Part shown: piece by piece, positions 36,726-64,000 of the stretch
Layout of the letters: each line of letters opens with the position of its first letter
Position numbering within the stretch: position 1 is the first letter of the stretch
Source: Basidiobolus meristosporus CBS 931.73
Lineage: Eukaryota > Fungi > Basidiobolomycota
Direction: 5' to 3'
Assembly: GCA_002104905.1 (NCBI GenBank)
Contig: MCFE01000458.1
Span: 7,806 to 71,805 of the forward strand
DNA: 64,000 nucleotides
Made by a program: the position numbers and the translations under genes
Notes under the pieces: model-generated
Told to the model about the DNA's origin: nothing
The model's input: only the letters and a program-made list of their open reading frames with translations
Database searches by the model: none

Positions 36726-37954
36726 TGCGTAGTATGAGGCTTGGGTGTGGGGAAGAGGGAGGGGGTTTCGCTTAAATACACCGAGAGCGGCCAGGACTTC
36801 CATTCATTGCTGGCGGTGGAGTGGTACAGACCACCAATCTAGCTTGACTTCGAATGGCGGTAATGAAGGTATAGATGAAGGCCAATATCGCTCGCAGGGA
36901 CAGCATTGGTGGTGTAACGGTCGTCTTGCACTCATTTAGTGCATCTAATAAACGGATCTGGTTGATTACTTGCAACCAGCCAGTCACCGCCCGGCTACCC
37001 ACAATTAAGGTTACTTTGATCGACCTATGGAATAAACAACTCCAACTGTGGGACATCTCATGTAGGCAGATACCAGCAGGAGCTGCTGCGCAACCTCCCT
37101 ATTCACTGAAATTAACCCGGATGCAATCAACCCCCTTGCCAATTCCAGCGATTTCCAGATCTCATCCGAGCTGATCCTGCCATGTCCGCATCGACCAGGA
37201 TCCGCTCACACCCTGGGCGCTAATAGCGTGCCCTCCCCCCGGTCACGTGGCTGGCGGGAATGGAGCCACCTTCAGCCAGAGCAGCGATCTCGTTTTCAAC
37301 GGCCGACCGCATGTCAGATTTGGGCATCTGCAGGCGAGCGTTGCACAAGATTTATTGTCTGGCCTGAAGCACCTAATGCTTGATGCAGATTCGTCCGTCG
37401 ACCCACCCCAAATGTCGTTGTACCAAGTGAGATGATCTTTAATTTCCACCTGTTGCCGGCAAGTGGCTTCCTTTCGGACGAGAGGCTAGCCATGAGTCAA
37501 GCAGAGGCAGCCGAGCATGAATCCAAGGTCGGCATGCTAGACATGGGGTCGCTCCTCTAAGCTCCTGGCAAGGTCATCATTACTAGGCTACCCTCCGCTG
37601 TGGCCATCCATGGGAGCGTTTGCTTCCGAAAGCGAATTCTCCATCTTGGCAAGAGGCCTCAACACACATTGCTTGGACTTCCAAGGGGGATGCTGGCAAA
37701 TGGGCGGAGGGAGGTAGCCATTCGCTCGAGGGATTACGACACCATCACAGCCCATAGGGGCCAGTGAAATCCGGCTGTGACAGGGGGAGTTTTTTTCCGG
37801 CTGCTGGCAGTGGTTGAGGATGATCCAGCTAGTGTTTGTGCTGGCCTGTAGCTGGTGATCATCGATGTTTGTGATGAGCCAAAATGATGTCTGTCATGAT
37901 GTTTCCACTCATGGAGCAAGTGACTACTGGTCGGACTGGTTAACCCCATTTCCC

Positions 37955-37998
37955 TCGCCCTCTCCTCTCCTCTCCTCTCCTTGCCCCGCCCCGCCCTA
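37955..37998 (+). repeat. (CTCTC)n and (GCCCC)n microsatellite
   Basis: ccctctcctctcctctcctctccttgccccgccccgccc, seen directly. Confidence 0.8.
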
Positions 37999-40549
37999 AA
38001 ACCAATGGGGGCTGCGACTGGATTCGCTGGAGCCTGTTTGCACTCAATTTAACCAGGCCAACCGCTCTATTTCAGATCGCCAGTTAGGTCATGGGACTGC
38101 TTGCAGCTGTGTGCCATACCGTTCCACCGCTATAGAGTGTTAGCTGGAAGCCCGTGGCAACCTCGGCTCTTCGGTCGGACTGTGGGCTCGGCTCTCTTGC
38201 ACCTTCAGCCTAGCTTCGACTAGGCTGTCATGGGTGGAGTGGGTGGTCTTTCGGCCAAACCTAGCAGCGCCATGTTTGTGTTGAGGGATCTATTCAGTAC
38301 CTTGTGAGGCTCAGCAAGAAATCCCAGATATCCACTGATGAATGGGAAGTTTTCCACTTTGTCCTCTTTTGGTCGTCCATCATTGGCGGACATTGATTTG
38401 TTGTGCATGCATGTTATTATTGATCTCTTGGTCTACCGTTCGTATTTGGCCCAACTCGGAGATTCGACTCCCACTGGCTAAGAGTGCTGCTGGCTGATGA
38501 AATGTCCCCATAGTCGGGGTATTCGAATCCACGAATGCAACCTCGAGGGCATCGTTCGAGTCGTAAACAGATCGTACTCGCAAAGCAGTGAAAGCTTTGT
38601 TGTTGGCTTTGCCTGCAGTTGCTTGTAAGCAGTAGGTCAGATGGAAGGAACATCCAGCAATCAGTTTGGATAATTGTTTGTTGCTCCTTTTGTTTGCGTT
38701 AGATTCAACACCAATGGTCCCGTCAACAAGGCTTTTCGGTGGTTTCAAAGTCTGCTGCATCGTCTGGGGACGATGAGACTTCTTCTGGTTTGAAATCACT
38801 CTGTGTCACAGTGATGTAGGTAGGGAGAATCGCCTGAAGCAGGCTACGAAATTGGTTTCCATGTAACGTTGTCAACTGGCAAATGCGAGTGGGACGTTAT
38901 TTACGCATTGTGCTCATAGAACCCATCATCAGTGCAAACCATAAATAGCAATCCTTTGCATCTCAATTGTAGAATGCAATCACCGCATTTGGTCGCACGC
39001 AGATGACATGGATGTTGATTTGTTGTTCCATCTATCAGGAATTTTCTATACATCACAGTCTTAACCCCGCTTGCTTAACCCTTGGTACCCCCTAGCTTAT
39101 TCCAAAGCACGTTCACTGCTTTACCCATCGGAACTTCGTATCTGCTTTCTACTAATTTGACTTATGGAGTGGCTAGTTGGGATCAAGGTATTGCAGATCT
39201 GGAAAAAATTGTTAATGGGTAATGAGGGCTGCATATCATATAGACAATCCAATTACTTGTGGTGTAGGATTATGTGCAAGAGCAGTTTGTTAAAATTCAC
39301 ATGAAAATCATGTTCTGATTCTGCATTATGAAGACTATTGATATTTACTCCAGAAGGCAGAAAGCAAGGTGTGTTCTTTTGCTGGCATCCTTGGACATGC
39401 AATTTTGTCCAATTCTTCTAATCCTTTTCTTTGTGGTTTTCATTAACCCATATAGAGGTATGCTGGGAGATGCAACTCTTGTCCTCTCAGAGCTTAATGC
39501 TAGCAATATTCCATTCAGATGTCATATACCTTACACTAGAGCTATTGGTGCACATAGCCATGCCTCAAGAGAGAATGTTAAGAAAAGGTCAGCAGAATAC
39601 CACAACAATATCAGCTGAATTACAAGTTTTTCAAAATATCTTTTGAGTTGCCACCATTATTAGTAATTTAAATCATGAGAGAGCTGGATTTTGGTGCCAA
39701 ATGATGCTGTATAGCTTTTATTGACAGATAGTCTTGTCTACCTGTGATTGTTACATTTTGAACATCAACCTCATTACTGTATTGGCTTAATATGTTTGGA
39801 TTCCATCTTCACACTCAAATAGTAACTTCTCAGAATCTACAATTGAATAGGTGTCTCTGAGTTAATGTACTTGTTTCATCTCCCTGGCAGGAGTTCCATA
39901 TGAGAAATCCCAAACTTGGTATTGAAGCCATTTCCAGCTGGCACTCAGCTGGTACATTCATGATATTTTGCTGTCATTCAGTTGGTGTTTTTCCTTGAAA
40001 TCTTCAGTGGGAATATCTTTAGGAAGTAGTGGGCAGTAGATTACCAAATTTGGTATGAATGTCAGCAAGCCTCATTTCCAATGCAAAATATGTCTGCTTG
40101 TCTGCCCAACAGTCCAAACATTATATATCAAGAGTTCTTGGTTGCACAAAACTTGGAATTCAGTTGATATCATGATGGTATTGTACTAGCCTTTTCTTAA
40201 CTTTTTTCTTATGGACCTTGTATCTTATATCATTATTTGTTCACTGACTCTTGAGCATCCAGAGCTTAATGTGACAGTTCAAGGTCTTAGGCCCCAGCTG
40301 GCAGATATTCCATTGGGTCCTGACAGCATTCATATGTATTTTCTTTACCACTGCTCTTGACAAAGTGCTGGAACCTCTGGAAATGTATAGTATTGTTTCA
40401 AAGCTACATAATGGGCACCACCAAAATACCATTGAAATACCAGCTAAAAATCCAATAAATTCCTAATGTGAGATCTTTCATAGGGATCAAATTCCTAACT
40501 TCCTGGTATTGGTACTTTGTGCATCAGTGAAGCTCTTACTGGAATCATA

Positions 40550-45589: not shown

Positions 45590-46882
45590 TGTTGTAAAAA
45601 TTTGTAATTCCACCTAAATATTCACCTAACTTAGTCACTTAGATCATTACCTTCAAATCCTAGAGAATACTGACCAAATTCCTTGTTGGGATTTACTTTG
45701 AATATTTTCACCAAAATACCAGGTACCCAGAGCATGAAAATTCTCAAAGCTGTCCAAACAGCCCCAATCTTTGCACACATGTTCTTGGGACCTTCCTTAA
45801 CCTATTCTACGTGTTTGTAATGCCAAGACCAGGTAAAAGTATAAATACTACTTTTACATTCAATAAATCAATAAGTGAGAACCACATAATATACTTGTTC
45901 TCCAAATCACTTCCAATATCTCCAAGACTCTTACAACAGGTTATGAGCCCCAAGCTGTCACTCTCTGCAGTGTCTACTACTGCTATTACTGGAATTTTTC
46001 CCTCTGCTGAAAAGTTGGATGGATCTAACTACCAAGTGTGGAAGGTGAAGATGAAGATGCTGCTACAAGAAAGAGGCCTTTGGGATATTGTCATGGGAGA
46101 AGAATGCCCTCCTAAAAACATGGGAGAGGAAGCCTTGAAGTACCAGAAGAAAGAACAAAGTGCCTTTAACTGCATTTGCCTTAATGTCAAGGACAAATTG
46201 CTAATTCAATGCTCAAGAGCAAAAACGGCAAAGAATGCCTGGAAAGCATTGGAAGACACCTACCAGTCATGTTCAGCTGCCAAGAAAATGTATCTGAGAC
46301 AAATATTCTTTACTACAAAGATGCTGCCAGGAGAAGAAATGAAAAATCTAATTAACAGAATTACCCTGCTGGTAGATGAGATGGAATCTGTGGGCATACC
46401 AACTACTGATGAGGATGTGATAGTTACCATCCTGAATAGCCTGACAGACAAGTTTCAGGGCCTTGTATCAGCCCTAGAGTCCAGAACTGAAGATTTGACC
46501 TTAAATTACGTATATGGAAGGCTCCTGGATGAAGAATTAAGAAAATCAAGCGCCAATAAGAATGAAGAAGAAAATGCTTTAATAAGCAATGCTAACCAAC
46601 AAAGGAGGTACCCAAGACCCTACAAAGGCAACAGCAACCTATTTTGCAACTACTGCAAAAGGAAAGGACACACATCAGACCGGTGTCTCAAAAAGAGAGA
46701 TTATCAGCAAAAGAAGCCTGAATATGGAAATGCTGTAACAACTGAAGATAGACTATTCATATCTGCACTAAATATGACCACAAACAAGGATTCTCAGACG
46801 TGGTATATTGACTCTGGAGCTTCTCAACACTTTACACACCAAAAAGAACTTTTTATCCAATATCTCCAAGACTCTTACAACA
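45590..46882 (+). mobile_element. Copia with intact 5' LTR (45590-45938), PBS and gag, and with pol deleted
   Basis: TGTTGTAA..TTACAACA LTR; PBS 45939-45950; gag fused to the last ~25 nt of an LTR at 46856-46882. Confidence 0.9.
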
Positions 46883-46890
46883 AGTACTAA
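45942..46890 (+). CDS. Copia Gag (UBN2-like core, CCHC zinc knuckle) plus protease start
   Basis: KLDGSNYQVWKVKMKMLLQERGLW, CNYCKRKGHTSDRC, WYIDSGASQH. ATG lies within the PBS. Confidence 0.88.
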
Positions 46891-48756
46891 TGAAGCAAGG
46901 TGCAGTGGCTGATAGGATACATGCAATGGCCCGGAGAAATCAGGAAATAGTCCAGAAACAGGATGAGCAGATAATATGTGTAGAGCAATCAATATCCTAG
47001 GTAGAGCAAGCAGTATCTTTGCAGCAAAGAAGGAACTCAAGTAGCTCAATATCACAGCCAAGAATTGGTCCATAAGAGTTGGAAGTCTGTGAGAACACAC
47101 ATTTCTTTGGCATCTAGAAGCTAAGCAGCCCCAACATCTGCATCATAAGTAAAGTAAGGCAAGGACACACTTGACACAACAAGCAACCAATTTTCTATTA
47201 GGACAATGTAAGTAAGGTGTGTCAGAAACCTCCTGGATGCAAGTCAATTTCCGCACCTTTGAATATGGAATTGACACAAAAATGGAGGGGAGTGCACCTG
47301 TTAGTGGTACTACAATCCAGCAGGGAGAAGGAATATATTGGCTAGGTACAGAGCAGTAATTTGCAGTTATTCAAGAGGGGATCATGGCAAACCTGGTGGC
47401 AACCAAGTGTATGTGAGCATGATGTAAGTGCTACCAACAATACAAGGCATATGGCAGCTTTGAAAGCATCACACCAAAAGACCATCTAGTCCAGGTGATA
47501 GAAGCGTGTGAATTGCAGCAGGTGTGAAAATATGTTGAGGTTAATACAAAGGAAGCAACGATTTTTTTTTGATTCAGGCGATTTGTCAAATACCCATGGT
47601 TATAATGGGTAAATAATAAGGAGGCATGATTTTGCAGTGCGATATATGAATGGTACAAGAGGAGGTAAAAAAGTGGAATACCATCAGGTAAATTGGTATG
47701 GCGGCATTATGCAATAAAAGTGGTTTCCAAGTGACAGTTTCAGCAACGTCAGAGCCCTTCCCCCGGGGGCAATGGAGAGTCACCAATCCAGGTAACAGCA
47801 CACCAAAAGATGCCAGACTGGGGTTTGAAACTCCACACGCATCTTTCAAAGGAAGCAAACCGAGGGGACCTCGAGCTATACCCACCATCTAGATGGGAAG
47901 AGGCCGGGTGCACAGTCGGTAGGCTCGGTTAGTGAGTTTGAGGTCGCTCAGCACTCTTGATGCTTCTCCAGTGCAGACAATCAGCAGGTTGTGGGTGGTG
48001 GCGCGGGGAGGGGGATTGACGGTCCACGAGAAACCAAGGTTTACCCGGAGGAAGTCTAGCCTGCTTCAAGAAGGGGAAGTGGAAAGACGCCTAGGGGGTA
48101 TTTGAGGTTTTCACCAGTTGGTTGCTGCCCCACCTAAACGATCAGTCACCGCTTGTGGCCGAGCTTGGTGAATCTATTAAGGTTCGGCACGCGCGATGTC
48201 AGCGGGTGAGCATATCTCACGATGGAGAGAACCATTAATTCGAGCATTGGATCCAATTAAGATCGCATCCTGTAAGACAGGGCAAATCAGGCTTCAGGAT
48301 GTTCTGGATTTGAGCACCCGTTTCTGGATACTGGACACAGTGGAATGTCTGTTGTTCAACAGACCCATCTGCGGGTCGGTGAGGACTGTCAAGCAACTCG
48401 GAATCAAGGCGCTCGTCGCAAAGGGAAGGGGCCCAGCCAAATGGCCAGCAACCTCCACCCTCCCAGCAGCAATGAGAAGAACCAGGGCTCGGAAGGCCGC
48501 TGGTGGGTCTCTCTGGACTTCTGCGTGGGGCACCTCGGTCATTCTTCGCCCTATGACACCCGCAGACCCACCTTCGAAAGAAAAATCCCAGTGGACTGCA
48601 GCAGTGGGAAACCTGTACCGTTGCCTCCTGTATCTAGAATTCGCCATCGCTGCCACACCATGCTGTTGCCATCGGTGAGATTAATTTATACTCATCGGCT
48701 CTAGATGAGCTAAGGCAATTATCCAACCACCGATTGATTAAGATCCAGGAGCCGCA

Positions 48757-48843
48757 ATCATCTCCATCAACCAAATCTCCATCATCTCCATCAACCAAAT
48801 CTCCATCATCTCCATCTCCATCTCCATTTCCATTTCCATTTCT
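48757..48843 (+). repeat. 24-bp tandem repeat (about 2.5 copies) grading into CCATCT/CCATTT hexamers
   Basis: atcatctccatcaaccaaatctcc twice, then ccatct and ccattt runs. Confidence 0.85.
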
Positions 48844-49285
48844 GTCGCCAACACTGAGGGTCGAGGGTAGAGGGTTGAGTGTTTGTGGATTCGGATCACT
48901 CGAAGGGTCTAGGAATCAGGTCAGCGTGAATCACCAGATGACTGTTTGATAGGATGTTCATTCAGTGCTTCACTCTCGGCCATCTAAAATCCGGTCTCTC
49001 ACCCCCTACATTCCTGTTCTCACCCTTAGATGGGCCTTGATGTAACATTGTTTGTTGTTGCCCACCGCCTCTGGTGGATTTCGTTCTTCATTAACTCCCT
49101 CGCATAAACTTTTCCTTTCATCGAAATATTCCCCTCTCCTCGTTTTGGCTTGATTTTCTAGCGAGAAAGCCGTTGCCTCGTCCCTTCCCTCCACCGCCAA
49201 AGCTCTTCTGCCCTACCCGTGTGACTCGTATTGTGGACAAGTTAGTACAGGAGACGCCGTGACCTTTCGCCCAACGTTCTTGGTG

Positions 49286-50273
49286 ATGCAACTTTCCCGT
49301 CGTAACACTTTGGCCTCTCAGTTGGTAGTATGGTTGTTGAGTTATTCCAGGGTATCGGTCAAGGTCGTCTTGGCCATCCTTCTGGCCCCCTTCACCATCC
49401 CCTTATTCAGACGCACCTCCACCATGCTGCTTACCATCCACAGGAAGTGGTTCTCTTATATTCCGACCATGTTTGATCCCCTTCACTACATCATCCAATT
49501 CATCTGGATTCCCGCTTCCAACACTCTGAAAGCCGCCTACCAGATCTGGGTTAGAAAGGGGTTCGAGACTCTGCTGCCCATGACCACCTGCAAAGAATAC
49601 GATCTAGAGTATGTCACCACCTTCCCGAAGCTCTCCCTCCCTCCCAGACGGCCCCGATTCAAGCCCGACACGAACAAGCTCCGGATGCAGATCGTGCGTA
49701 ATATCGAGGCGAAATGTCCGTAGGGATTCTGCCTGCTTCCTGTCGTCAGCCCACTAACGCTTTTTTGCACAGGGAGGCGCAAGGCGCTAACCAAATGGGT
49801 CAAAGAGGCTTCGATAGCCCTGGCGCAACCGCGTAGTAAGTGCTCTCCATTCCCTCTCAACCGAGCTGTGCTAACCCCTGGAATAGCGGAAAGAGGACAA
49901 CACCCTAGAGTGCTCGAGCTCCCCGAAAAGCCCCGGAGACGGGAGAAGGCTCGTTTCAAGGAAGAGACCCGGCGGGAGCTGTTTCTTTTCGAGCCCGCCG
50001 GCCTGGTCTCTCGGGCCTCATCAAGACTGCCGCCACGTCTGCTCACCGCTCCGAAATCACCACCTTCCCCCATCAGAATGCATAGGCAGGCCTTCCACGC
50101 TAGTTCGGGAATGCGAGCCATGAACTGCTCGGTGGACGAGTATCCGTTGCATCCCGGCGCGTCTGCCAGCTACCATACGTTAGTTTACCTAACACCCATT
50201 TAACCGAATTGTTCCTCCTGTCCTGTGGTCCATTAGCCACTGCCCCACCTCCACCGCACACGACTTCACCTAG
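49286..50273 (+). CDS. Uncharacterised 4-exon protein (about 273 aa) with hydrophobic N-terminal segments and a basic, Pro/Arg-rich C-terminus
   Basis: Exons 49286-49715, 49773-49835, 49887-50178, 50237-50273 join in phase to 822 nt. Introns of 57, 51 and 58 nt; the first two have CTAAC branch sites. Donors GTCCGT, GTAAGT, GTTAGT. CpG-rich context. The start is uncertain. Confidence 0.55.
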
Positions 50274-51671
50274 TGCCCATGACGAGAGATCCCGGGACTG
50301 GCATATAGCGCGCGGTCCACTTCTCCACCCTAACCCCTTTACTTATTCCCTCGTACATGTATTGCATTTTGTATCCACAGAAGCAATGAACCCGCGACAT
50401 TTGTTGATTGTCTATGCCCGTTATTTGAGTATCACCTGTCCTTTGCCCAGCCTCACCCGACCTCATAGGAAGCCTTGACGGGATAGCCTCCGTCCAATGT
50501 TTGATAAAAGCGATGTTTACATATACCACTGCCACAGGCCATTCTGTATCGCCCTCTCCTTTGCCACACAGCGGACACGTCGTCCAGGCTCGTCGCATCT
50601 GGCCCAGGGTCATCGACACTGGTTTCATGCTTTTGCCCATGCCAGATGGGATCCAAGCACCGCTCGAGACACGCCCCAGCCATCTAGCAGAGCCGTCGCT
50701 GAACTAGGATAGATGGATGCGGGAGGGAAATCCTGTTTCAGGGCCACCCGGCCACCGAGTCGAGCATTCCAGGGTCGGTTTCGCGGAGTAGTCGCCCGCA
50801 CCTTGGCGAAATCCGAAACGCCCTTCCTGTATAAGCAGCGCAGATCCCGAATCCTCCCACCAGAACGCTGATCGCAGATGGCTCCCATCTGAATCCCCAC
50901 CCCATTTCGCACCTGTTTGGCCGTATAACTGTATCTATCTCTAGTCTGAAGCGGCCGCCCGGACTGATGAGCAGCAGCCGTGTGTGCATATTCGCCGAAT
51001 CAGTAAATTAAATGCTGGGTTCTACCCCCATACACCCGGCAGCCCCGATGAGGCCATTGGTTGGCGCCTCCCAGGGAACAGCTCTGATTGGAGCTGCGAG
51101 ATGGCTGCCATACATCTGGCTAGTGCAGGGTAGTTGGGGACTGGCTGCCGCTTTTGCTGCTGATCAGTGTGCAGTCACATGAGCTGCGGGCGGGCATCTA
51201 GCTTCCTAGCCTCGATGGATCTGGCTGGCAATCTGGTCAGACAGCGCAAGGAGTGAGGCTGCACGCGGGGCACTCATTTCTCTATCCTTGCTCTTAGCGC
51301 CGGTGAGGCCCATCGGTCAAGGCAGTCAGCGCAGCCCCCAGCCCGCATCCCATGGATCTGTGCGCAAGCCACCTGGCTGGCGCCGGGCCGCATGCATCCC
51401 AAGGCAGTGACTGGTGTGTGGATTCAGCAGCAAACGGATGGTTGGGTGATGGTGAAATCAAGAAACATTTACTTGGTTATAATACTTCGGATAAATCAAA
51501 TTAAGGGTATTCTTAGTGGTCGGGACAGATCCAGCCCCATCACTCAACTGAAATCCAAGGAAAATGGAAAAATAATTCAGTTGTCGGTGGTTGGGACTTG
51601 GAAAATATAAACAACTTCAATTGGTGGACCCTATGCTAGGTGCTGAGTGGAATAAGAAATGCGCTGGGGTG

Positions 51672-53388
51672 TTAGACGTCTAGTGGGGTGAACTTGGGTA
51701 TGGGTGGTAGGGTGATACTGATGGCCTCGTGCGGTGTACTGGAGGTTGAGAGGCTGGTGGTACTGGACTGACTGGACAGTGTGGATGCCCTGTCCAAAGA
51801 TTCCACAGTAGCTGTGGATCTGGTTCTGGAGGTTGTGAACGAGGGGTCGGTGGAGTTGCTTGTCTTGGTAAAGAAGCGACGTTCCTGCATTGTCTTGACG
51901 TAGACTTCGGTGTCGATTGTTTGGGGAAATTCGTAGCCATCACCTGAACTGGTTCAAGGGTGAGGACCGGTGATATGAGCCAGTGGAGTGCAGGTTGATT
52001 CACTTACCTATTCACAGTTGGTGCTATGGAGTTGGCGTGAAGGTAGGAGAGTGAGTTAGTAATGTGACTGGGCACCACAGCACGAAGGAAACTGAGCTTT
52101 TAGTACCAAACCATAGCCAGAAGCTCGCGCCCATAATCGCCTTCCAGTTCTCCAACGGCCCCAAATCGTACACATTCACCCTGGGCTCAATATGCTTTTG
52201 CTTTTGTCTAATGTTCTCTATAGTCGTCTGGTTCCGGAGAATCAGTCTTGTGTGAAAAACGGTGAATGCAACCAAGAAGATCCCCAAGAGCGATGCCAAG
52301 GCTATCAGAAGCGTCCATTCGATATGGACACCCTGCCCTTCCTACAGTACTGATCAGTCATAGACCCGCACGGATGCGTCAAACTCGTACTTACATTGTA
52401 TCGCGCCACCACGGGATATGTGACTGATGCGGGAATGTAGATGCAGTACAGTGAGGTGTATAGAATTAATAAATAGAAGATCTTATAGTTGCGCCAACCG
52501 ACACATCGATTGATCCTAGGAGAGGAGGGTGGTTAATGGAAAGAAAGGTGGCCAGCGGCATGGACTCGGTCTTACCATGGGCAGTGACTATATTCCCAAG
52601 AAGCAAGGCGGAATGGATCGGGTTAGTGCCGTGCAGGGCATTACTAGGATGAACATGAACACTACGTACTGATCCATTTTTAAGATACACTTATCGCAGC
52701 TTGAGCAATGATGGCAACGCTGAGGCTTATGGGTCCCACAATGATTACAGTAGCTGACTTGGATCTGATCCGGCCCCGTTCCCTCCAGCACCCAATTGGT
52801 GCTTTTCATGGTATCATACTGTCCGACGTTGGGCAGCACCATAGCCATGTCGGGCTTTCGAAGGGCACTTTGATGGTATGCATCGCACCAAGGTTCTGAG
52901 ACTAAGCTTGGAAGGGACTCGTGGCTGTCCACAGCTAGCAATTCTCTCTGGCTCGCATGCCCCTTGCTATCGTGCAGAATATTGAACTGTCATTCATCGT
53001 TGGGAGTGGCTTAGTATACTTGATATCAAAATCGGGCCATGCTTGAGCAATTTACCTGGATTGGGGAGCCGGCGTGGGTCAGAACGGCACGAAGATAGCA
53101 TACTACAACCAGGGCGAAAAGAATACTAAAGATGGAAAGCTGAGCAACTGTAGGTGTGTTAGTAAGAAAATGCCGCCAGGTGAGTTTCCGATGCCTACAC
53201 TTACTCGCTTGCTCAAAGTTATACGAGATCAACTCAGCTTCAATAGAGTTAGAACCGGATCTTGGTGAATATGGCCTCTGAGCATACTAACCAACAAGAC
53301 TGAATACATATGTGTAATAGGACCAGCCTAGGAGAATTATGACAAACACTATTGGAAGGTTCCCGCGTATAAAACTCTTCTGTGCCAT
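51672..53388 (-). CDS. DHHC-type palmitoyltransferase (Pfa3/ZDHHC2-like), 9 exons, about 392 aa
   Basis: Exons 53388-53292, 53237-53205, 53147-53056, 52965-52670, 52587-52576, 52515-52395, 52341-52107, 52023-52008, 51948-51672 splice GT-AG in phase to 1179 nt. Motifs: [70 protein letters not shown]. The ATG is preceded by TTTCAG, so an upstream exon or 5'UTR intron is possible. Confidence 0.93.
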
Positions 53389-54200
53389 CTGAAATAGTAA
53401 TACTCCACGAATACACTGTAACTGTGATATTAATTCTCAGAAGATGACAAGTTGAAGAGTAAAAAGCCGAGGAAAATCTTAAATGAGAGCTGACTATGGC
53501 TAACTAGGAGACAGCAGTCAATAAATACTTTCATAGGGAGTAGGCCGCATTGTATGATATGTCGGCACCCAATGTGAGAAGATAAGACAATGCTGGGCTT
53601 CGAGTACGTGAAAGCACATGAAGAATAGAAGCCCAAGTGCTTGGGACTCATAGCATCACATATGTAAGCCCTATAAAACGTCTGGAGATATCTGTAAATT
53701 GGCAATGTACTCACGATATTCCATAGCACCACACAATAAAAAAATCAAAAACCCGATAAAAATTATACAGATAATTAAATATTTATTATGTATACGCTGC
53801 AAATTGATTGTAAAGGTCATAGGTTAGGAAAAAAAGATACATCAAACATGCGTATTTAGCCAACATAGATTGTTAAATACGAAATGGATTGTTGGAGACA
53901 CATACGTATGTAGTAATGCATGAAAAGTTCATGTTGCATCGGCCCAGAAAGCGGTAACAAAGTAATGCAGAGGAAATCAATGCATGTGAGTGATCGAGCC
54001 AATTCAACCACAACAAAATATAAACGCTTCACGATAGATATTAGGATTGACTATTTCACTATGATCAACAAATTCCCCAGCCCCTTAAAATCCTGGAAAT
54101 CGCTTCGATGAAAATCAGCTTGTGGCCCCACTCATGCCAGGAGATATATAGTTTATTGGGCTCGGTCAGATTTTAGTCAAAGCTTATCATAAGCGATAGT

Positions 54201-54282
54201 GACACTTTGGCGGAGTGGTTAACGCGGTGCCCTGCTAAGGCATTTCCCTATGGGAGCGCAGGTTCGAATCCTGCAGGTGTCG
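54201..54282 (+). tRNA. tRNA-Ser (GCT), unit 1
   Basis: GACACTT/AGGTGTC acceptor stem, anticodon arm GTGCC-CT GCT AA-GGCAT, long variable arm TCCC-TAT-GGGA, GTTCGAATC T-loop, TTTT terminator downstream. Confidence 0.97.
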
Positions 54283-54432
54283 ACTCTTTTGTAACATCTG
54301 TACTAGATGAGACTTTGGATATAATTTTGTATTCATCCAACTGTTGTGTGATGCCTGTGGCGGCTCATGTTCTCTATCCTCTATCGATTTAGATATCCTC
54401 AAACCGGCCACGGCCGTTCGAAATACCTAGGA

Positions 54433-54518
54433 GCTTCGTTAGCTTAGTGGGTTAGGCGGTGTAGCAAAGAGGAGGGGGCAACTCAAATCCCTGGTTCAAT
54501 GCCCTCCCGGCAGATGCT
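54433..54518 (+). pseudogene. Degenerate tRNA-like Pol III element (also at 57701-57786 and 60969-61054)
   Basis: GCTTCGT-TA-GCTT-AGTGGGTT-AGGC gives an intact D-arm and a consensus A box (TAGCTTAGTGG); B box GGTTCAATGC at 54493-54502. No anticodon stem, and the acceptor and T stems are broken. Confidence 0.55.
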
Positions 54519-55438
54519 AATGGCCACTAGATCGCCAGAAATGATAACCTAGAGCGGTTATGGCAAACTTTTTGATGGCACAAACTAAATTGACTAGGTC
54601 GCGTAACAATGAATCACATCATTAATTAGCCCTAAAACCCTAATTCAATTGCAGCAGGATAAGAGTTTAAACTTTTAATAAAGAAATCTGGGCTCCCATT
54701 TCTCCAGGAACGCAGACGTAGGAAGTTGACGGCCAGTCTAAAACAAAAGCACAATCATGAGATTTGAGCTTGTATTTCTTGCGGAGCTTGAGTGGCCACT
54801 GCCTGAGGGTGTGATACATACGCTTAGGGTCAACTCAATGATATTGCTGAAAGGTATTCAGGCTAATAATGCCACCACCTACACATACCTGGCTCCCGAG
54901 AAGAAGATTGCAATATTCACCCTATTCTACAGATGAGACTTCTCAGCTTAACTTCAGTTAGGGAAAGCTGATCCGTATGGCGGGAAGTCACGTACTCGAC
55001 AAACAAACAGGACGGCGCAGGCTTTTCGCCAAGTTTTCAGTTATTTCCCTTATAAGTGGAGTATCAGCATATCCAGTACTTTGTGATGGAGCGCAAAAAA
55101 AACATCAGCCCTATATTTGACACTGAAATCCCAGGTACCTGAAGACAATTTAGGCACCATAGGTGATACAAATTTCTCGGTATACTTATTATTTACAAGC
55201 ACAAAGATGCACTCATCAAACATGCTAGTCAGAATTACAGTCCTGGTGTTGAAAACAACTAATTCAGCCGACTAGCACTTCCAGTATACCTCTTTAGCAC
55301 CAACCGGCCCCGGTGCTACGAACCGAGATACCTAAGCACAGGACATGCCAGCGATTGAAAAGGTGCTTCTATGAAATAGAACGGTTGTGCCACTTGGAGC
55401 TCACCATATCTATGCCGAAATCAGAAAAATAAAATACA

Positions 55439-55511
55439 TGCCGTCTCTGCGGATCGAACGCAGGACCTTCAGAACTTCAGTCTGACGCTCTCCCAACTGA
55501 GCTAAGACGGC
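55439..55511 (-). tRNA. tRNA-Phe (GAA), unit 1, intronless
   Basis: Reverse complement GCCGTCTTAGCTCAGTTGGGAGAGCGTCAGACTGAAGTTCTGAAGGTCCTGCGTTCGATCCGCAGAGACGGCA folds into a cloverleaf; oligo-T follows. Confidence 0.97.
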
Positions 55512-55908
55512 GAGGATACATTACAGAAAGGACTAGCCTACCAACGACCTTCCACATACTACTATATCACCACAAGCTCAATACTTAGTTCTCACACTTT
55601 CTCAACGGAACCGTCAAACTTGAAGGATAGATCAGCCTACGCACTAGATGTCGTATACAAGGAGATGCCTAGCTTCTACACGGATAGCTTTTGTATGTCA
55701 TATTAATTTAACTATCCCAAGTAGCCGAGTGCCCGGAGGGTTCATTTTTACCGGGAAAAGGGCGTTACCATTGGATATTGCGTTCGAAATCAAACGTACA
55801 TATGATAATCCAATATCTATCTACTCCAAGTAATACTCGTTTGAGTGGTGAGCATAAAGTATTCCTCAGGATGGATAGATTTCCCAGAAACAGCTTTGGA
55901 AGCAAATA

Positions 55909-55982
55909 GCTCTTGTGGCGCAATTGGCTAGCGCGTCTGACTGTTAATCAGGAGGTTGGTGGTTCAAGCCCACCCAGGAGCG
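55909..55982 (+). tRNA. tRNA-Asn (GTT), unit 1
   Basis: GCTCTTG/CAGGAGC acceptor stem, TCTGA-CT GTT AA-TCAGG anticodon arm, GTTCAAGCC T-loop, TTTTT terminator. Confidence 0.97.
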
Positions 55983-56174
55983 ATTGTTTTTGCCTAGCTA
56001 CCTTAATGCTAGAGGCATTATACTTTTGGTCAGTTTTAACAACAACAATTGCGCTACCTCTTTTTGCCAGGTCAAGGCCAACCGACTCCTCTTGCTTCCC
56101 ATTGGGGAAGCTCCATGCACGCACTAATTTGTGAAAAGCGCAAGAAGTGTAGAGCCTCGAAGGAAATAAAAAAG

Positions 56175-56259
56175 TCCGAACACCCGGATTTGAACCAGGG
56201 ACCTAAAGATTGCTATGTAACACTACAGTCTTCCGCTCTACCAACTGAGCTATGTTCGG
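56175..56259 (-). tRNA. tRNA-Tyr (GTA), unit 1, 12-nt intron at 56211-56222
   Basis: CCGAACA/TGTTCGG acceptor stem; GAAGA-CT GTA G-[TGTTACATAGCA]-A-TCTTT puts the intron at canonical position 37/38, and it contains TTACA able to pair with the anticodon. Confidence 0.96.
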
Positions 56260-56522
56260 AATCTTACGAAAAAGGACATCCCTTGAAACATGATAGCTTT
56301 TCACTGTCGAAAGTAGTATGCATGCGTCTGATTAGTCTGGCACTGCTTTCGGACGTGTGGATTTTGACAAGGCTCAGGTACAATCTTACAATAGGCAAAA
56401 GGGTATGAGGTACAATCGTACTGTAGTCAAGCGATGTATCACTCTCCCGGTAGTAAAATTTCCGAACAGGCATTACAAAGAGTCCCCACGGTCGACCCTC
56501 CTTCAGACTTCACAAAAATGAA

Positions 56523-56595
56523 TGCCTTCTGCCGGAATCGAACCAGCGACCTTCTGCTTACTAGGCAGACGCTCTGCCAACTGAGCCAAGGAGGC
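56523..56595 (-). tRNA. tRNA-Thr (AGT), unit 1
   Basis: GCCTCCT/AGAAGGC acceptor stem (one C5-A68 mismatch), TCTGC-CT AGT AA-GCAGA anticodon arm, GTTCGATTC T-loop. Confidence 0.95.
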
Positions 56596-56729
56596 ATTTT
56601 CTGATGGGTTTTTGTGTATATATCTAATTTCTTAATGACAATCATCCTTGCGTATAAAGTATACAAATGCTATTCTCGATATTAAAGCCTTCCCCTTGAA
56701 GGGAAATACCACCACAGACAGTTTTAAAA

Positions 56730-56800
56730 TGCATACTCGGGGAATCGAACCCCGGTCTACCGCGTGGCAGGCGGTAATTATACCACTAAACCAAGTATGC
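56730..56800 (-). tRNA. tRNA-Gly (GCC), unit 1
   Basis: GCATACT/AGTATGC acceptor stem, ACCGC-CT GCC AC-GCGGT anticodon arm, 71 nt with short variable loop. Confidence 0.97.
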
Positions 56801-57224
56801 TTTGTTACGAATATTGTAGTAGCTGATCTACTCAATTACCAAATCCATGTATCATCATTAGGGGCTGTGGTGGATTACGTTGCCACTTAGTCATCGAAGG
56901 CTCACTTAAGCCGGCTAGACTCCTTAGGGTGGGCCCTCCGAATGTAAAACTACGAAAAACCAACAGACCCGGCCTTTCTCTACAGCCAAGAATGTAGATG
57001 CTTGGAGAGCAAAAGTGGCCAGAGCCAAAAGGGATCCATCGCATATCTAGTAGTATCATAAGCATGCCATCTCAATTCCTAAGAGATATCCATTAAGAAC
57101 CGAGTATGTACTGGCCCTTTGTAAATCTAGAAGGCTGGTTCATTCATTTTGTATGGTCCCAAGTGAGGCCACATGAAAAGGAAAGAAATATTGTGCACAC
57201 CAATCACGGCTGTTGCAAAAGAGA

Positions 57225-57295
57225 TGCGTTAACTGGGAGTCGAACCCAGGCCAACTGCTTGGAAGGCAGTTATTCTACCGCTATACTATTAACGC
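57225..57295 (-). tRNA. tRNA-Gly (TCC), spanning the unit 1/2 boundary
   Basis: GCGTTAA/TTAACGC acceptor stem, ACTGC-CT TCC AA-GCAGT anticodon arm, GTTCGACTC T-loop, TTTT terminator. Confidence 0.97.
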
Positions 57296-57468
57296 TTCAC
57301 GATAGATATTAGGATTGACTATTTCACTATGATCAACAAATTCCCCAGCCCCTTAAAATCCTGGAAATCGCTTCGATGAAAATCAGCTTGTGGCCCCACT
57401 CATGCCAGGAGATATATAGTTTATTGGGCTCGGTCAGATTTTAGTCAAAGCTTATCATAAGCGATAGT

Positions 57469-57550
57469 GACACTTTGGCGGAGTGGTTAACGCGGTGCCC
57501 TGCTAAGGCATTTCCCTATGGGAGCGCAGGTTCGAATCCTGCAGGTGTCG
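57469..57550 (+). tRNA. tRNA-Ser (GCT), unit 2
   Basis: Same sequence as 54201-54282 (+3268). Confidence 0.97.
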
Positions 57551-58706
57551 ACTCTTTTGTAACATCTGTACTAGATGAGACTTTGGATATAATTTTGTAT
57601 TCATCCAACTGTTGTGTGATGCCTGTGGCGGCTCATGTTCTCTATCCTCTATCGATTTAGATATCCTCAAACCGGCCACGGCCGTTCGAAATACCTAGGA
57701 GCTTCGTTAGCTTAGTGGGTTAGGCGGTGTAGCAAAGAGGAGGGGGCAACTCAAATCCCTGGTTCAATGCCCTCCCGGCAGATGCTAATGGCCACTAGAT
57801 CGCCAGAAATGATAACCTAGAGCGGTTATGGCAAACTTTTTGATGGCACAAACTAAATTGACTAGGTCGCGTAACAATGAATCACATCATTAATTAGCCC
57901 TAAAACCCTAATTCAATTGCAGCAGGATAAGAGTTTAAACTTTTAATAAAGAAATCTGGGCTCCCATTTCTCCAGGAACGCAGACGTAGGAAGTTGACGG
58001 CCAGTCTAAAACAAAAGCACAATCATGAGATTTGAGCTTGTATTTCTTGCGGAGCTTGAGTGGCCACTGCCTGAGGGTGTGATACATACGCTTAGGGTCA
58101 ACTCAATGATATTGCTGAAAGGTATTCAGGCTAATAATGCCACCACCTACACATACCTGGCTCCCGAGAAGAAGATTGCAATATTCACCCTATTCTACAG
58201 ATGAGACTTCTCAGCTTAACTTCAGTTAGGGAAAGCTGATCCGTATGGCGGGAAGTCACGTACTCGACAAACAAACAGGACGGCGCAGGCTTTTCGCCAA
58301 GTTTTCAGTTATTTCCCTTATAAGTGGAGTATCAGCATATCCAGTACTTTGTGATGGAGCGCAAAAAAAACATCAGCCCTATATTTGACACTGAAATCCC
58401 AGGTACCTGAAGACAATTTAGGCACCATAGGTGATACAAATTTCTCGGTATACTTATTATTTACAAGCACAAAGATGCACTCATCAAACATGCTAGTCAG
58501 AATTACAGTCCTGGTGTTGAAAACAACTAATTCAGCCGACTAGCACTTCCAGTATACCTCTTTAGCACCAACCGGCCCCGGTGCTACGAACCGAGATACC
58601 TAAGCACAGGACATGCCAGCGATTGAAAAGGTGCTTCTATGAAATAGAACGGTTGTGCCACTTGGAGCTCACCATATCTATGCCGAAATCAGAAAAATAA
58701 AATACA

Positions 58707-58779
58707 TGCCGTCTCTGCGGATCGAACGCAGGACCTTCAGAACTTCAGTCTGACGCTCTCCCAACTGAGCTAAGACGGC
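58707..58779 (-). tRNA. tRNA-Phe (GAA), unit 2
   Basis: Same sequence as 55439-55511 (+3268). Confidence 0.97.
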
Positions 58780-59176
58780 GAGGATACATTACAGAAAGGA
58801 CTAGCCTACCAACGACCTTCCACATACTACTATATCACCACAAGCTCAATACTTAGTTCTCACACTTTCTCAACGGAACCGTCAAACTTGAAGGATAGAT
58901 CAGCCTACGCACTAGATGTCGTATACAAGGAGATGCCTAGCTTCTACACGGATAGCTTTTGTATGTCATATTAATTTAACTATCCCAAGTAGCCGAGTGC
59001 CCGGAGGGTTCATTTTTACCGGGAAAAGGGCGTTACCATTGGATATTGCGTTCGAAATCAAACGTACATATGATAATCCAATATCTATCTACTCCAAGTA
59101 ATACTCGTTTGAGTGGTGAGCATAAAGTATTCCTCAGGATGGATAGATTTCCCAGAAACAGCTTTGGAAGCAAATA

Positions 59177-59250
59177 GCTCTTGTGGCGCAATTGGCTAGC
59201 GCGTCTGACTGTTAATCAGGAGGTTGGTGGTTCAAGCCCACCCAGGAGCG
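59177..59250 (+). tRNA. tRNA-Asn (GTT), unit 2
   Basis: Same sequence as 55909-55982 (+3268). Confidence 0.97.
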
Positions 59251-59442
59251 ATTGTTTTTGCCTAGCTACCTTAATGCTAGAGGCATTATACTTTTGGTCA
59301 GTTTTAACAACAACAATTGCGCTACCTCTTTTTGCCAGGTCAAGGCCAACCGACTCCTCTTGCTTCCCATTGGGGAAGCTCCATGCACGCACTAATTTGT
59401 GAAAAGCGCAAGAAGTGTAGAGCCTCGAAGGAAATAAAAAAG

Positions 59443-59527
59443 TCCGAACACCCGGATTTGAACCAGGGACCTAAAGATTGCTATGTAACACTACAGTCTT
59501 CCGCTCTACCAACTGAGCTATGTTCGG
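59443..59527 (-). tRNA. tRNA-Tyr (GTA) with 12-nt intron, unit 2
   Basis: Same sequence as 56175-56259 (+3268). Confidence 0.96.
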
Positions 59528-59790
59528 AATCTTACGAAAAAGGACATCCCTTGAAACATGATAGCTTTTCACTGTCGAAAGTAGTATGCATGCGTCTGAT
59601 TAGTCTGGCACTGCTTTCGGACGTGTGGATTTTGACAAGGCTCAGGTACAATCTTACAATAGGCAAAAGGGTATGAGGTACAATCGTACTGTAGTCAAGC
59701 GATGTATCACTCTCCCGGTAGTAAAATTTCCGAACAGGCATTACAAAGAGTCCCCACGGTCGACCCTCCTTCAGACTTCACAAAAATGAA

Positions 59791-59863
59791 TGCCTTCTGC
59801 CGGAATCGAACCAGCGACCTTCTGCTTACTAGGCAGACGCTCTGCCAACTGAGCCAAGGAGGC
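59791..59863 (-). tRNA. tRNA-Thr (AGT), unit 2
   Basis: Same sequence as 56523-56595 (+3268). Confidence 0.95.
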
Positions 59864-59997
59864 ATTTTCTGATGGGTTTTTGTGTATATATCTAATTTCT
59901 TAATGACAATCATCCTTGCGTATAAAGTATACAAATGCTATTCTCGATATTAAAGCCTTCCCCTTGAAGGGAAATACCACCACAGACAGTTTTAAAA

Positions 59998-60068
59998 TGC
60001 ATACTCGGGGAATCGAACCCCGGTCTACCGCGTGGCAGGCGGTAATTATACCACTAAACCAAGTATGC
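59998..60068 (-). tRNA. tRNA-Gly (GCC), unit 2
   Basis: Same sequence as 56730-56800 (+3268). Confidence 0.97.
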
Positions 60069-60492
60069 TTTGTTACGAATATTGTAGTAGCTGATCTACT
60101 CAATTACCAAATCCATGTATCATCATTAGGGGCTGTGGTGGATTACGTTGCCACTTAGTCATCGAAGGCTCACTTAAGCCGGCTAGACTCCTTAGGGTGG
60201 GCCCTCCGAATGTAAAACTACGAAAAACCAACAGACCCGGCCTTTCTCTACAGCCAAGAATGTAGATGCTTGGAGAGCAAAAGTGGCCAGAGCCAAAAGG
60301 GATCCATCGCATATCTAGTAGTATCATAAGCATGCCATCTCAATTCCTAAGAGATATCCATTAAGAACCGAGTATGTACTGGCCCTTTGTAAATCTAGAA
60401 GGCTGGTTCATTCATTTTGTATGGTCCCAAGTGAGGCCACATGAAAAGGAAAGAAATATTGTGCACACCAATCACGGCTGTTGCAAAAGAGA

Positions 60493-60563
60493 TGCGTTAA
60501 CTGGGAGTCGAACCCAGGCCAACTGCTTGGAAGGCAGTTATTCTACCGCTATACTATTAACGC
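60493..60563 (-). tRNA. tRNA-Gly (TCC), unit 2/3 boundary
   Basis: Same sequence as 57225-57295 (+3268). Confidence 0.97.
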
Positions 60564-60736
60564 TTCACGATAGATATTAGGATTGACTATTTCACTATGA
60601 TCAACAAATTCCCCAGCCCCTTAAAATCCTGGAAATCGCTTCGATGAAAATCAGCTTGTGGCCCCACTCATGCCAGGAGATATATAGTTTATTGGGCTCG
60701 GTCAGATTTTAGTCAAAGCTTATCATAAGCGATAGT

Positions 60737-60818
60737 GACACTTTGGCGGAGTGGTTAACGCGGTGCCCTGCTAAGGCATTTCCCTATGGGAGCGCAGGTT
60801 CGAATCCTGCAGGTGTCG
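60737..60818 (+). tRNA. tRNA-Ser (GCT), unit 3
   Basis: Same sequence as 54201-54282 (+6536). Confidence 0.97.
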
Positions 60819-61974
60819 ACTCTTTTGTAACATCTGTACTAGATGAGACTTTGGATATAATTTTGTATTCATCCAACTGTTGTGTGATGCCTGTGGCGGC
60901 TCATGTTCTCTATCCTCTATCGATTTAGATATCCTCAAACCGGCCACGGCCGTTCGAAATACCTAGGAGCTTCGTTAGCTTAGTGGGTTAGGCGGTGTAG
61001 CAAAGAGGAGGGGGCAACTCAAATCCCTGGTTCAATGCCCTCCCGGCAGATGCTAATGGCCACTAGATCGCCAGAAATGATAACCTAGAGCGGTTATGGC
61101 AAACTTTTTGATGGCACAAACTAAATTGACTAGGTCGCGTAACAATGAATCACATCATTAATTAGCCCTAAAACCCTAATTCAATTGCAGCAGGATAAGA
61201 GTTTAAACTTTTAATAAAGAAATCTGGGCTCCCATTTCTCCAGGAACGCAGACGTAGGAAGTTGACGGCCAGTCTAAAACAAAAGCACAATCATGAGATT
61301 TGAGCTTGTATTTCTTGCGGAGCTTGAGTGGCCACTGCCTGAGGGTGTGATACATACGCTTAGGGTCAACTCAATGATATTGCTGAAAGGTATTCAGGCT
61401 AATAATGCCACCACCTACACATACCTGGCTCCCGAGAAGAAGATTGCAATATTCACCCTATTCTACAGATGAGACTTCTCAGCTTAACTTCAGTTAGGGA
61501 AAGCTGATCCGTATGGCGGGAAGTCACGTACTCGACAAACAAACAGGACGGCGCAGGCTTTTCGCCAAGTTTTCAGTTATTTCCCTTATAAGTGGAGTAT
61601 CAGCATATCCAGTACTTTGTGATGGAGCGCAAAAAAAACATCAGCCCTATATTTGACACTGAAATCCCAGGTACCTGAAGACAATTTAGGCACCATAGGT
61701 GATACAAATTTCTCGGTATACTTATTATTTACAAGCACAAAGATGCACTCATCAAACATGCTAGTCAGAATTACAGTCCTGGTGTTGAAAACAACTAATT
61801 CAGCCGACTAGCACTTCCAGTATACCTCTTTAGCACCAACCGGCCCCGGTGCTACGAACCGAGATACCTAAGCACAGGACATGCCAGCGATTGAAAAGGT
61901 GCTTCTATGAAATAGAACGGTTGTGCCACTTGGAGCTCACCATATCTATGCCGAAATCAGAAAAATAAAATACA

Positions 61975-62047
61975 TGCCGTCTCTGCGGATCGAACGCAGG
62001 ACCTTCAGAACTTCAGTCTGACGCTCTCCCAACTGAGCTAAGACGGC
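61975..62047 (-). tRNA. tRNA-Phe (GAA), unit 3
   Basis: Same sequence as 55439-55511 (+6536). Confidence 0.97.
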
Positions 62048-62444
62048 GAGGATACATTACAGAAAGGACTAGCCTACCAACGACCTTCCACATACTACTA
62101 TATCACCACAAGCTCAATACTTAGTTCTCACACTTTCTCAACGGAACCGTCAAACTTGAAGGATAGATCAGCCTACGCACTAGATGTCGTATACAAGGAG
62201 ATGCCTAGCTTCTACACGGATAGCTTTTGTATGTCATATTAATTTAACTATCCCAAGTAGCCGAGTGCCCGGAGGGTTCATTTTTACCGGGAAAAGGGCG
62301 TTACCATTGGATATTGCGTTCGAAATCAAACGTACATATGATAATCCAATATCTATCTACTCCAAGTAATACTCGTTTGAGTGGTGAGCATAAAGTATTC
62401 CTCAGGATGGATAGATTTCCCAGAAACAGCTTTGGAAGCAAATA

Positions 62445-62518
62445 GCTCTTGTGGCGCAATTGGCTAGCGCGTCTGACTGTTAATCAGGAGGTTGGTGGTT
62501 CAAGCCCACCCAGGAGCG
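62445..62518 (+). tRNA. tRNA-Asn (GTT), unit 3
   Basis: Same sequence as 55909-55982 (+6536). Confidence 0.97.
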
Positions 62519-62710
62519 ATTGTTTTTGCCTAGCTACCTTAATGCTAGAGGCATTATACTTTTGGTCAGTTTTAACAACAACAATTGCGCTACCTCTTTT
62601 TGCCAGGTCAAGGCCAACCGACTCCTCTTGCTTCCCATTGGGGAAGCTCCATGCACGCACTAATTTGTGAAAAGCGCAAGAAGTGTAGAGCCTCGAAGGA
62701 AATAAAAAAG

Positions 62711-62795
62711 TCCGAACACCCGGATTTGAACCAGGGACCTAAAGATTGCTATGTAACACTACAGTCTTCCGCTCTACCAACTGAGCTATGTTCGG
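62711..62795 (-). tRNA. tRNA-Tyr (GTA) with 12-nt intron, unit 3
   Basis: Same sequence as 56175-56259 (+6536). Confidence 0.96.
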
Positions 62796-63058
62796 AATCT
62801 TACGAAAAAGGACATCCCTTGAAACATGATAGCTTTTCACTGTCGAAAGTAGTATGCATGCGTCTGATTAGTCTGGCACTGCTTTCGGACGTGTGGATTT
62901 TGACAAGGCTCAGGTACAATCTTACAATAGGCAAAAGGGTATGAGGTACAATCGTACTGTAGTCAAGCGATGTATCACTCTCCCGGTAGTAAAATTTCCG
63001 AACAGGCATTACAAAGAGTCCCCACGGTCGACCCTCCTTCAGACTTCACAAAAATGAA

Positions 63059-63131
63059 TGCCTTCTGCCGGAATCGAACCAGCGACCTTCTGCTTACTAG
63101 GCAGACGCTCTGCCAACTGAGCCAAGGAGGC
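63059..63131 (-). tRNA. tRNA-Thr (AGT), unit 3
   Basis: Same sequence as 56523-56595 (+6536). Confidence 0.95.
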
Positions 63132-63265
63132 ATTTTCTGATGGGTTTTTGTGTATATATCTAATTTCTTAATGACAATCATCCTTGCGTATAAAGTATAC
63201 AAATGCTATTCTCGATATTAAAGCCTTCCCCTTGAAGGGAAATACCACCACAGACAGTTTTAAAA

Positions 63266-63336
63266 TGCATACTCGGGGAATCGAACCCCGGTCTACCGCG
63301 TGGCAGGCGGTAATTATACCACTAAACCAAGTATGC
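63266..63336 (-). tRNA. tRNA-Gly (GCC), unit 3
   Basis: Same sequence as 56730-56800 (+6536). Confidence 0.97.
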
Positions 63337-63760
63337 TTTGTTACGAATATTGTAGTAGCTGATCTACTCAATTACCAAATCCATGTATCATCATTAGGGG
63401 CTGTGGTGGATTACGTTGCCACTTAGTCATCGAAGGCTCACTTAAGCCGGCTAGACTCCTTAGGGTGGGCCCTCCGAATGTAAAACTACGAAAAACCAAC
63501 AGACCCGGCCTTTCTCTACAGCCAAGAATGTAGATGCTTGGAGAGCAAAAGTGGCCAGAGCCAAAAGGGATCCATCGCATATCTAGTAGTATCATAAGCA
63601 TGCCATCTCAATTCCTAAGAGATATCCATTAAGAACCGAGTATGTACTGGCCCTTTGTAAATCTAGAAGGCTGGTTCATTCATTTTGTATGGTCCCAAGT
63701 GAGGCCACATGAAAAGGAAAGAAATATTGTGCACACCAATCACGGCTGTTGCAAAAGAGA

Positions 63761-63831
63761 TGCGTTAACTGGGAGTCGAACCCAGGCCAACTGCTTGGAA
63801 GGCAGTTATTCTACCGCTATACTATTAACGC
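63761..63831 (-). tRNA. tRNA-Gly (TCC), unit 3/4 boundary
   Basis: Same sequence as 57225-57295 (+6536). Confidence 0.97.
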
Positions 63832-64000
63832 TTCACGATAGATATTAGGATTGACTATTTCACTATGATCAACAAATTCCCCAGCCCCTTAAAATCCTGG
63901 AAATCGCTTCGATGAAAATCAGCTTGTGGCCCCACTCATGCCAGGAGATATATAGTTTATTGGGCTCGGTCAGATTTTAGTCAAAGCTTATCATAAGCGA

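Follow-up and report, generated by a model that had tools for sequence, protein, structure and literature searches.

In most fungi, transfer RNA (tRNA) genes are dispersed. What kind of locus is it, then, when seven different tRNA genes of Basidiobolus meristosporus CBS 931.73 recur together, unit after unit, and what keeps the units alike? We addressed this question in a 64,000-nt stretch of contig MCFE01000458.1 (71,805 bp; assembly GCA_002104905.1), hereafter called the window, which covers record bases 7806-71805, so that the end of the window is the end of the contig. The array itself is a genuine, amplified and homogenised tRNA gene (tDNA) locus. It occupies positions 54023-64000 of the window as 3.05 head-to-tail units of 3,268 bp, and it is under-represented in the assembly.

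Structure of the tRNA gene array

Comparison of the sequence with itself at a lag of 3,268 bp, from 54023 to 64000, revealed 0 mismatches, and the period is exactly 3,268 bp. Unit 1 lies at 54023-57290, unit 2 at 57291-60558 and unit 3 at 60559-63826, followed by only the 174-bp start of a fourth unit (63827-64000) where the array runs off the end of MCFE01000458.1; that is, the long-read assembly breaks off inside the array. No similarity to the unit was detected in the other 54 kb of the window.

ARAGORN identified 21 tRNA genes in the 64-kb window, every one within 54200-63831, and zero in the 54 kb left of the array. They form three identical sets of seven, with seven anticodons per unit, and the Rfam tRNA model matched 21/21 of them at 59.9-65.7 bits, compared with a gathering score of 29. 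The strand order within the unit is + - + - - - -. It starts with tRNA-Ser(GCT) on the plus strand (54201-54282, copies at 57469-57550 and 60737-60818; 61.3 bits, T4 downstream), followed by tRNA-Phe(GAA) on the minus strand (55439-55511, copies at 58707-58779 and 61975-62047; 65.7 bits) and tRNA-Asn(GTT) on the plus strand (55909-55982, copies at 59177-59250 and 62445-62518; 65.7 bits). The remaining four genes are all on the minus strand, namely tRNA-Tyr(GTA) (56174-56259, copies at 59442-59527 and 62710-62795; 59.9 bits), tRNA-Thr(AGT) (56523-56595, copies at 59791-59863 and 63059-63131; 65.1 bits), tRNA-Gly(GCC) (56730-56800, copies at 59998-60068 and 63266-63336; 65.6 bits) and tRNA-Gly(TCC), which runs across the unit boundary (57225-57295, copies at 60493-60563 and 63761-63831; 65.1 bits). 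A 12-nt intron interrupts the tRNA-Tyr gene at the anticodon loop, and the gene shows the C1-G72 pair typical of eukaryotic tRNA-Tyr.

A and B boxes are recognisable in each of these genes, a T4-T6 run lies no more than 10 nt downstream of every one, and CCA is encoded in none. With their mixed strands, internal A and B boxes and own T-runs, the seven genes look like separate RNA polymerase III (Pol III) units, as predicted from the sequence. A polycistronic tRNA transcription unit was also considered and does not fit the mixed strands together with the T-run after every gene. No upstream motif common to the genes was found: the best 7-mer occurred in 5/7 upstream regions, but 96/100 shuffles did equally well or better.

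The tRNA genes occupy 530 nt, or 16% of the unit. The spacers between them are 134-1,156 bp long with a guanine-plus-cytosine (GC) content of 32-44%, the longest homopolymer in the unit is A8, and Tandem Repeats Finder detected no short tandem repeats in 54-64 kb. The original prediction, which had been made from the letters of the window, had claimed an array of this unit length, gene content and strand arrangement, with independently transcribed Pol III genes and complex spacers free of such repeats. The searches and the period analysis bear out the structural claims, and the mixed strands, boxes and terminators agree with the predicted mode of transcription.

Nothing else was recognised within the unit. 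No transposon was found inside the three units, no other RNA family, including 5S, reached its gathering score, and Rfam searches relaxed to E<=1 for the unit and to E<=10 for the 1.15-kb spacer gave only chance-level matches; ARAGORN at 75% thresholds added only weak, overlapping calls. The long Ser-Phe spacer (54283-55438, 1,156 bp by the Rfam coordinates of tRNA-Ser) holds no RNA family and no credible open reading frame (ORF), and the unit as a whole has short ORFs only, none of them credible as a protein gene. One stretch of this spacer, 54436-54510, looks tRNA-like by eye, with apparent A and B boxes; it was rejected on finding no tRNA match even at E=10. The annotation places a 97-amino-acid gene model on the plus strand at 56115-56408 and again at 59383-59676, antisense across tRNA-Tyr and with no Pfam match. 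These models are most likely spurious. When the model was used to look for the far end of the array on other contigs, MCFE01000458.1 alone was found to carry it.

The array start at 54023 is a true left junction and lies within a Gly-TCC gene. Alignment of the flank with the unit revealed a Gly-TCC relic on the minus strand at 54019-54027, of which the first 5 nt remain (54023-27), or 9 nt if one mismatch is allowed, and the intact divergent spacer between Gly-TCC and Ser follows. No decayed older units were found left of the array. A simple in-place duplication is not expected to start in this way where every internal junction rebuilds a complete gene. It is more likely that the leftmost unit was cut back later, or that a ready-made piece of array was inserted at the site.

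Copy number of the array

To estimate how far the array extends, we used the assembler word depth of contigs from two public runs of the source sample (X1 and X2) over 52000-57999. For the flank, contig depths were 111 and 83 (X1) and 97 (X2), and contigs made purely of array spacer had depths of 996-1,275 in X1 and 1,013-1,330 in X2, a spacer/flank ratio of ~12 in both runs. This ratio implies ~12 units (~39 kb) per flank copy, of which the contig shows a quarter. The same excess in two runs means that the assembly under-represents the array, which contradicts an assembly artefact; single-copy depth over the unit, which the original prediction had named as the sign of such an artefact, is clearly not what was found. 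The description of the locus as similar to ribosomal DNA in the same prediction overstates its scale. No inter-unit variants were seen at 10% of depth or more in the source runs.

A separate observation concerns the tRNA bodies. Over 55400-57400, the contig word depth summed over tRNA bodies amounted to 10^2 to nearly 10^4 times the depth of the single-copy flank. This held for the source strain and for two relatives alike, and ~1,200 different contigs were placed on a 6-kb stretch, mostly at tRNA genes. Such a sum cannot be read as a copy number. It does suggest a very large set of tRNA genes in varied sequence surroundings, and since it lies far above the spacer depth it points to many further copies of these tRNAs elsewhere. 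The speculation that the array supplies Ser, Phe, Asn, Tyr, Thr and Gly for secreted and cell-wall proteins gained no support.

The cassette in relatives

We then compared the unit with contigs of two relatives, B and C. In relative B, a 6.7-kb contig of depth 20 carries the flank with the DHHC gene and matches the window at 89-92% identity. Its homologous spacer contigs had depths of 1,222-1,673, or ~60-80 times the single-copy level. They match the Asn-Tyr spacer (55956-56198, 87% identity, depth 1,582), the start of the Tyr gene with its upstream region (56233-56317, 89%, depth 1,516), the Thr-Gly(GCC) spacer (56571-56754, 95%, depth 1,532) and the Gly(TCC)-Ser spacer (57269-57497, 94%, depth 1,673). 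The joints within these contigs preserve the Phe-Asn, Asn-Tyr, Tyr-Thr, Thr-Gly(GCC) and Gly(TCC)-Ser adjacencies. In relative C, the Thr-Gly(GCC) adjacency is present with a 78-nt deletion at a depth of ~250, against ~5 for single-copy sequence. Since these gene adjacencies are common to the relatives, the cassette is older than the split of these taxa, and the unit order that the original prediction proposed to seek in related genomes is found to this extent.

The spacers, unlike the gene order, have changed. They show indels of 78-186 nt, and at an identity of at least 85% relative B has no counterpart of the long Ser-Phe spacer, the Phe-Asn spacer or most of the Gly(GCC)-Gly(TCC) spacer. 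An imperfect direct repeat of ~35 nt (CCGGCC..CG..ACGAA..ATACCTA), at 54401-54435 and 55300-55337, brackets ~900 bp of the long Ser-Phe spacer; the bracketed stretch lacks a counterpart in relative B, and the repeat may mark an old insertion. The copy number also differs several-fold, from ~12 here to ~60-80 in relative B and ~40-60 in relative C.

Spacer divergence between the taxa is about equal to flank divergence, and the copies within a genome are uniform. The 100% identity within the array, set against 87-95% to the spacers of relative B, fits concerted evolution by unequal exchange or conversion, which the original prediction had also put forward. The dispersed repeats beside the array are merely 61-93% alike, so the uniformity belongs to the array and not to the region.

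An all-protein HMMER search with the ORF antisense to tRNA-Tyr, aimed at the arrays of the relatives, returned no Basidiobolus matches and only unrelated metagenome tRNA-Tyr repeats, and two scans of Joint Genome Institute (JGI) metagenome contigs, one with the Thr-Gly(GCC) adjacency and the other with intron-bearing tRNA-Tyr, gave 0 matches. One unrelated metagenome contig (ENA ERZ28675667 ctg598, L005:1-18498) contains ~79 intron-bearing tRNA-Tyr-like genes with a period of ~207 bp, which the gene caller had read as long repetitive ORFs. A second metagenome contig, ERZ26222911 (19 kb), has a similar periodic ORF pattern.

Origin and role of the array

Taken together, the locus is best explained by a model, which we consider probable, in which seven independent Pol III genes were amplified as a block, recombination made the units uniform and tRNA gene dosage is the main effect. 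In this model, about a dozen 3,268-bp cassettes of seven ordinary nuclear tRNA genes would form a genuine chromosomal tandem array, in which each gene would be transcribed as its own Pol III unit from internal A and B boxes to its own T-run terminator. Unequal exchange or gene conversion between units would keep them uniform, the copy number would shift quickly between related strains or species, and the dosage of the seven genes would be multiplied as a block. The structure, gene content, copy excess and conservation of gene order in the relatives are the observations on which the model builds.

Several points weigh against this proposal or its parts. That selection acts on dosage is an assumption. 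Polishing of a collapsed long-read repeat may account in part for the perfect identity of the three assembled units, and both runs have breaks between short-read contigs near 54,66x-54,73x, a hint of minor variation between units. The word depths do not come from mapped reads, both runs are from the same sample, and depth alone cannot separate one 12-unit locus from two 6-unit loci. The high-copy contigs of the relatives could be paralogous cassette families and not the orthologous array. Finally, no RNA runs containing the long Ser-Phe spacer were listed, although poly-A libraries would not show tRNAs anyway.

If selection for dosage is left aside, the array might be a neutral or selfish tDNA satellite that grows and shrinks by unequal exchange and brings no selected benefit, perhaps helped by fork pausing at Pol III genes, with many of its copies possibly silent. 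Such a satellite would fit the several-fold differences in copy number, the turnover of spacers seen in the indels and in the long Ser-Phe spacer, and a left junction that cuts a tRNA gene and suggests sloppy rearrangement; the summed depth of the tRNA bodies, far over that of the spacers, would likewise mean that these tRNAs have many other copies. However, each of the 21 genes is intact and scores as a canonical tRNA gene (60-66 bits), and their order is kept in three taxa despite diverging spacers, as expected if the genes are constrained, and we regard this explanation as unlikely. By analogy with what has been proposed for Schizosaccharomyces japonicus (S. japonicus) centromeres and Entamoeba chromosome ends, the array might instead be a structural element of the chromosome, either a TFIIIC-bound boundary or part of a pericentromeric or subtelomeric domain. 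These precedents, and the gene-poor bordering DNA, which is rich in transposon fragments and old dispersed repeats and leaves ~four gene models in the last 38 kb of the contig, speak for such a role. The window contains no telomere repeat, 1.2 kb separate the array from the start of an ordinary DHHC gene, and ~39 kb is small for such a role, which makes it quite improbable.

The remaining two alternatives concern the reality of the array and of its genes. If the long-read assembler had wrongly multiplied one cassette, identical units at a contig end would result, as observed here, but the spacer-specific short-read contigs at ~12 times the flank depth in both runs leave this explanation with very little credence. 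The array could also consist of tRNA-derived short interspersed nuclear elements or retro-copies in place of true tRNA genes, a view to which the apparent boxes at 54436-54510 would lend themselves. Yet that stretch is present at array depth, so it does not belong to a dispersed family; the unit has seven full-length cloverleaves with high Rfam scores, one of them with a proper intron, and poly-A tails and target-site duplications are absent. We consider this the most far-fetched of the alternatives.

Beyond block amplification at this one locus, the summed depth of the tRNA bodies, which in three taxa exceeds that of the flank by factors of hundreds to thousands and is again not a copy number, gives a hint of a genome-wide pattern. 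Tentatively, Basidiobolus might have a very large set of nuclear tRNA genes, of the order of one thousand, with most of them in a few homogenised cassette arrays conserved across the genus. This organisation would resemble that of Entamoeba and would have arisen independently in an early-diverging fungus. The haploid genome of B. ranarum has been estimated at 350 Mb (PMC3281927), several times the size of this ~90-110-Mb assembly, and collapsed arrays might account for part of the DNA that is missing between the two, if the summed depths correspond to true copy numbers.

Relation to known tRNA gene arrays

Arrays of this kind are already known from a frog, an amoeba and a fission yeast. In the frog Xenopus laevis, the repeat reportedly contains several isoacceptors, including Phe, Tyr and Asn, on both strands, with complex non-repetitive spacers, head-to-tail units and each gene transcribed alone by Pol III, and the unit is said to be repeated in the hundreds, compared with ~12 in Basidiobolus. 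This 3.18-kb tandem tDNA repeat of eight tRNA genes (Muller, Clarkson & Galas, Nucleic Acids Res 1987; via PMC1635290) is the closest match in architecture, and its unit is nearly the same size (3.18 vs 3.27 kb). However, Xenopus is an animal and not a fungus, and its gene set overlaps that of Basidiobolus only in part.

The original prediction was aware of no description of this organisation in fungi. Such a description exists: the telomere-to-telomere assembly of S. japonicus has tandem units of 3 kb and 5.6-6.4 kb with 6-18 different tRNA genes (bioRxiv 10.1101/2023.09.04.556195). There, too, the tRNA arrays had been collapsed in earlier assemblies and adjoin DNA rich in long terminal repeats (bioRxiv 10.1101/2023.09.04.556195). 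The two cases differ in several respects. S. japonicus belongs to Taphrinomycotina, and Basidiobolus to Zoopagomycota, a distant lineage. The S. japonicus arrays fill centromeres and one subtelomere, whereas the Basidiobolus array runs off the contig end; its flank is rich in transposon fragments. The former combine tRNA with 5S genes, whereas the Basidiobolus unit has a different gene set and no 5S match at the gathering score or at E<=1.

Entamoeba also has homogenised arrays of mixed tRNA genes, in which array types and gene order are kept between species and the spacers diverge (PMC2652664; bioRxiv 10.64898/2026.07.06.736064). Each chromosome has such arrays at one of its ends; nearly all tRNA genes belong to them, and they account for >10% of the genome (PMC2652664). 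Unlike the seven-gene unit described here, with its complex spacers, Entamoeba units have 1-5 genes and spacers rich in short tandem repeats. Arabidopsis thaliana shares the tandem multi-tRNA unit, in the form of a Ser-Tyr-Tyr array on chromosome 1 with 27 units of three genes that arose by local duplication (PMC2886086); this is a plant array with just two tRNA species per unit and with units that have diverged from one another. According to a 2010 survey, large tDNA clusters arise independently in many eukaryotes. Among the genome papers on Basidiobolus and zygomycetes that we searched, we found none that mentions tRNA arrays, and we found no report of this kind of array for Basidiobolus or Zoopagomycota.

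If homogenised multi-tRNA arrays occur in a second fungal lineage, unrelated to the first, this would indicate that the organisation has arisen repeatedly, in frog, amoeba and fission yeast and also in a gut fungus of zygomycete grade. As a culturable organism, Basidiobolus could then serve for studying what drives such arrays, whether tRNA supply for very large cells, chromatin effects of Pol III and TFIIIC, or plain repeat dynamics. On the practical side, the array ends a contig, is ~four-fold under-represented in the reference and attracts spurious protein models, and tRNA counts, codon-adaptation analyses and genome-size accounting for B. meristosporus need correcting.

Genomic neighbourhood of the array

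The left neighbour of the array is the DHHC palmitoyltransferase gene K493DRAFT_233998 (52024-52809, minus strand). Further left, positions 1-47500 of the window hold few genes and are dense in old, diverged dispersed repeats. Transposon fragments in this part include a copia gag ORF at 45811-46890, a PIF/Harbinger DDE transposase ORF at 13070-14029 and a CACTA tnp2 transposase fragment at 12315-12773.

Two GC islands, at 34000-38000 and 48000-52000, reach 51-54% GC against a background of ~40%. The first contains a gene for a Kre9/KNH-like Ser/Thr-rich wall protein (36072-36722, minus strand), and an ORF at 36072-36551 (minus strand) is identical (100%) in its protein to the hypothetical protein K493DRAFT_233997. 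In the second, the annotation has a 269-amino-acid gene at 49286-50203 (plus strand) that matches no Pfam family and is accompanied by numerous overlapping ORFs on both strands, and a short coding-like tandem repeat of 24-nt and CATCTC-type units adjoins this island at 48757-48842.

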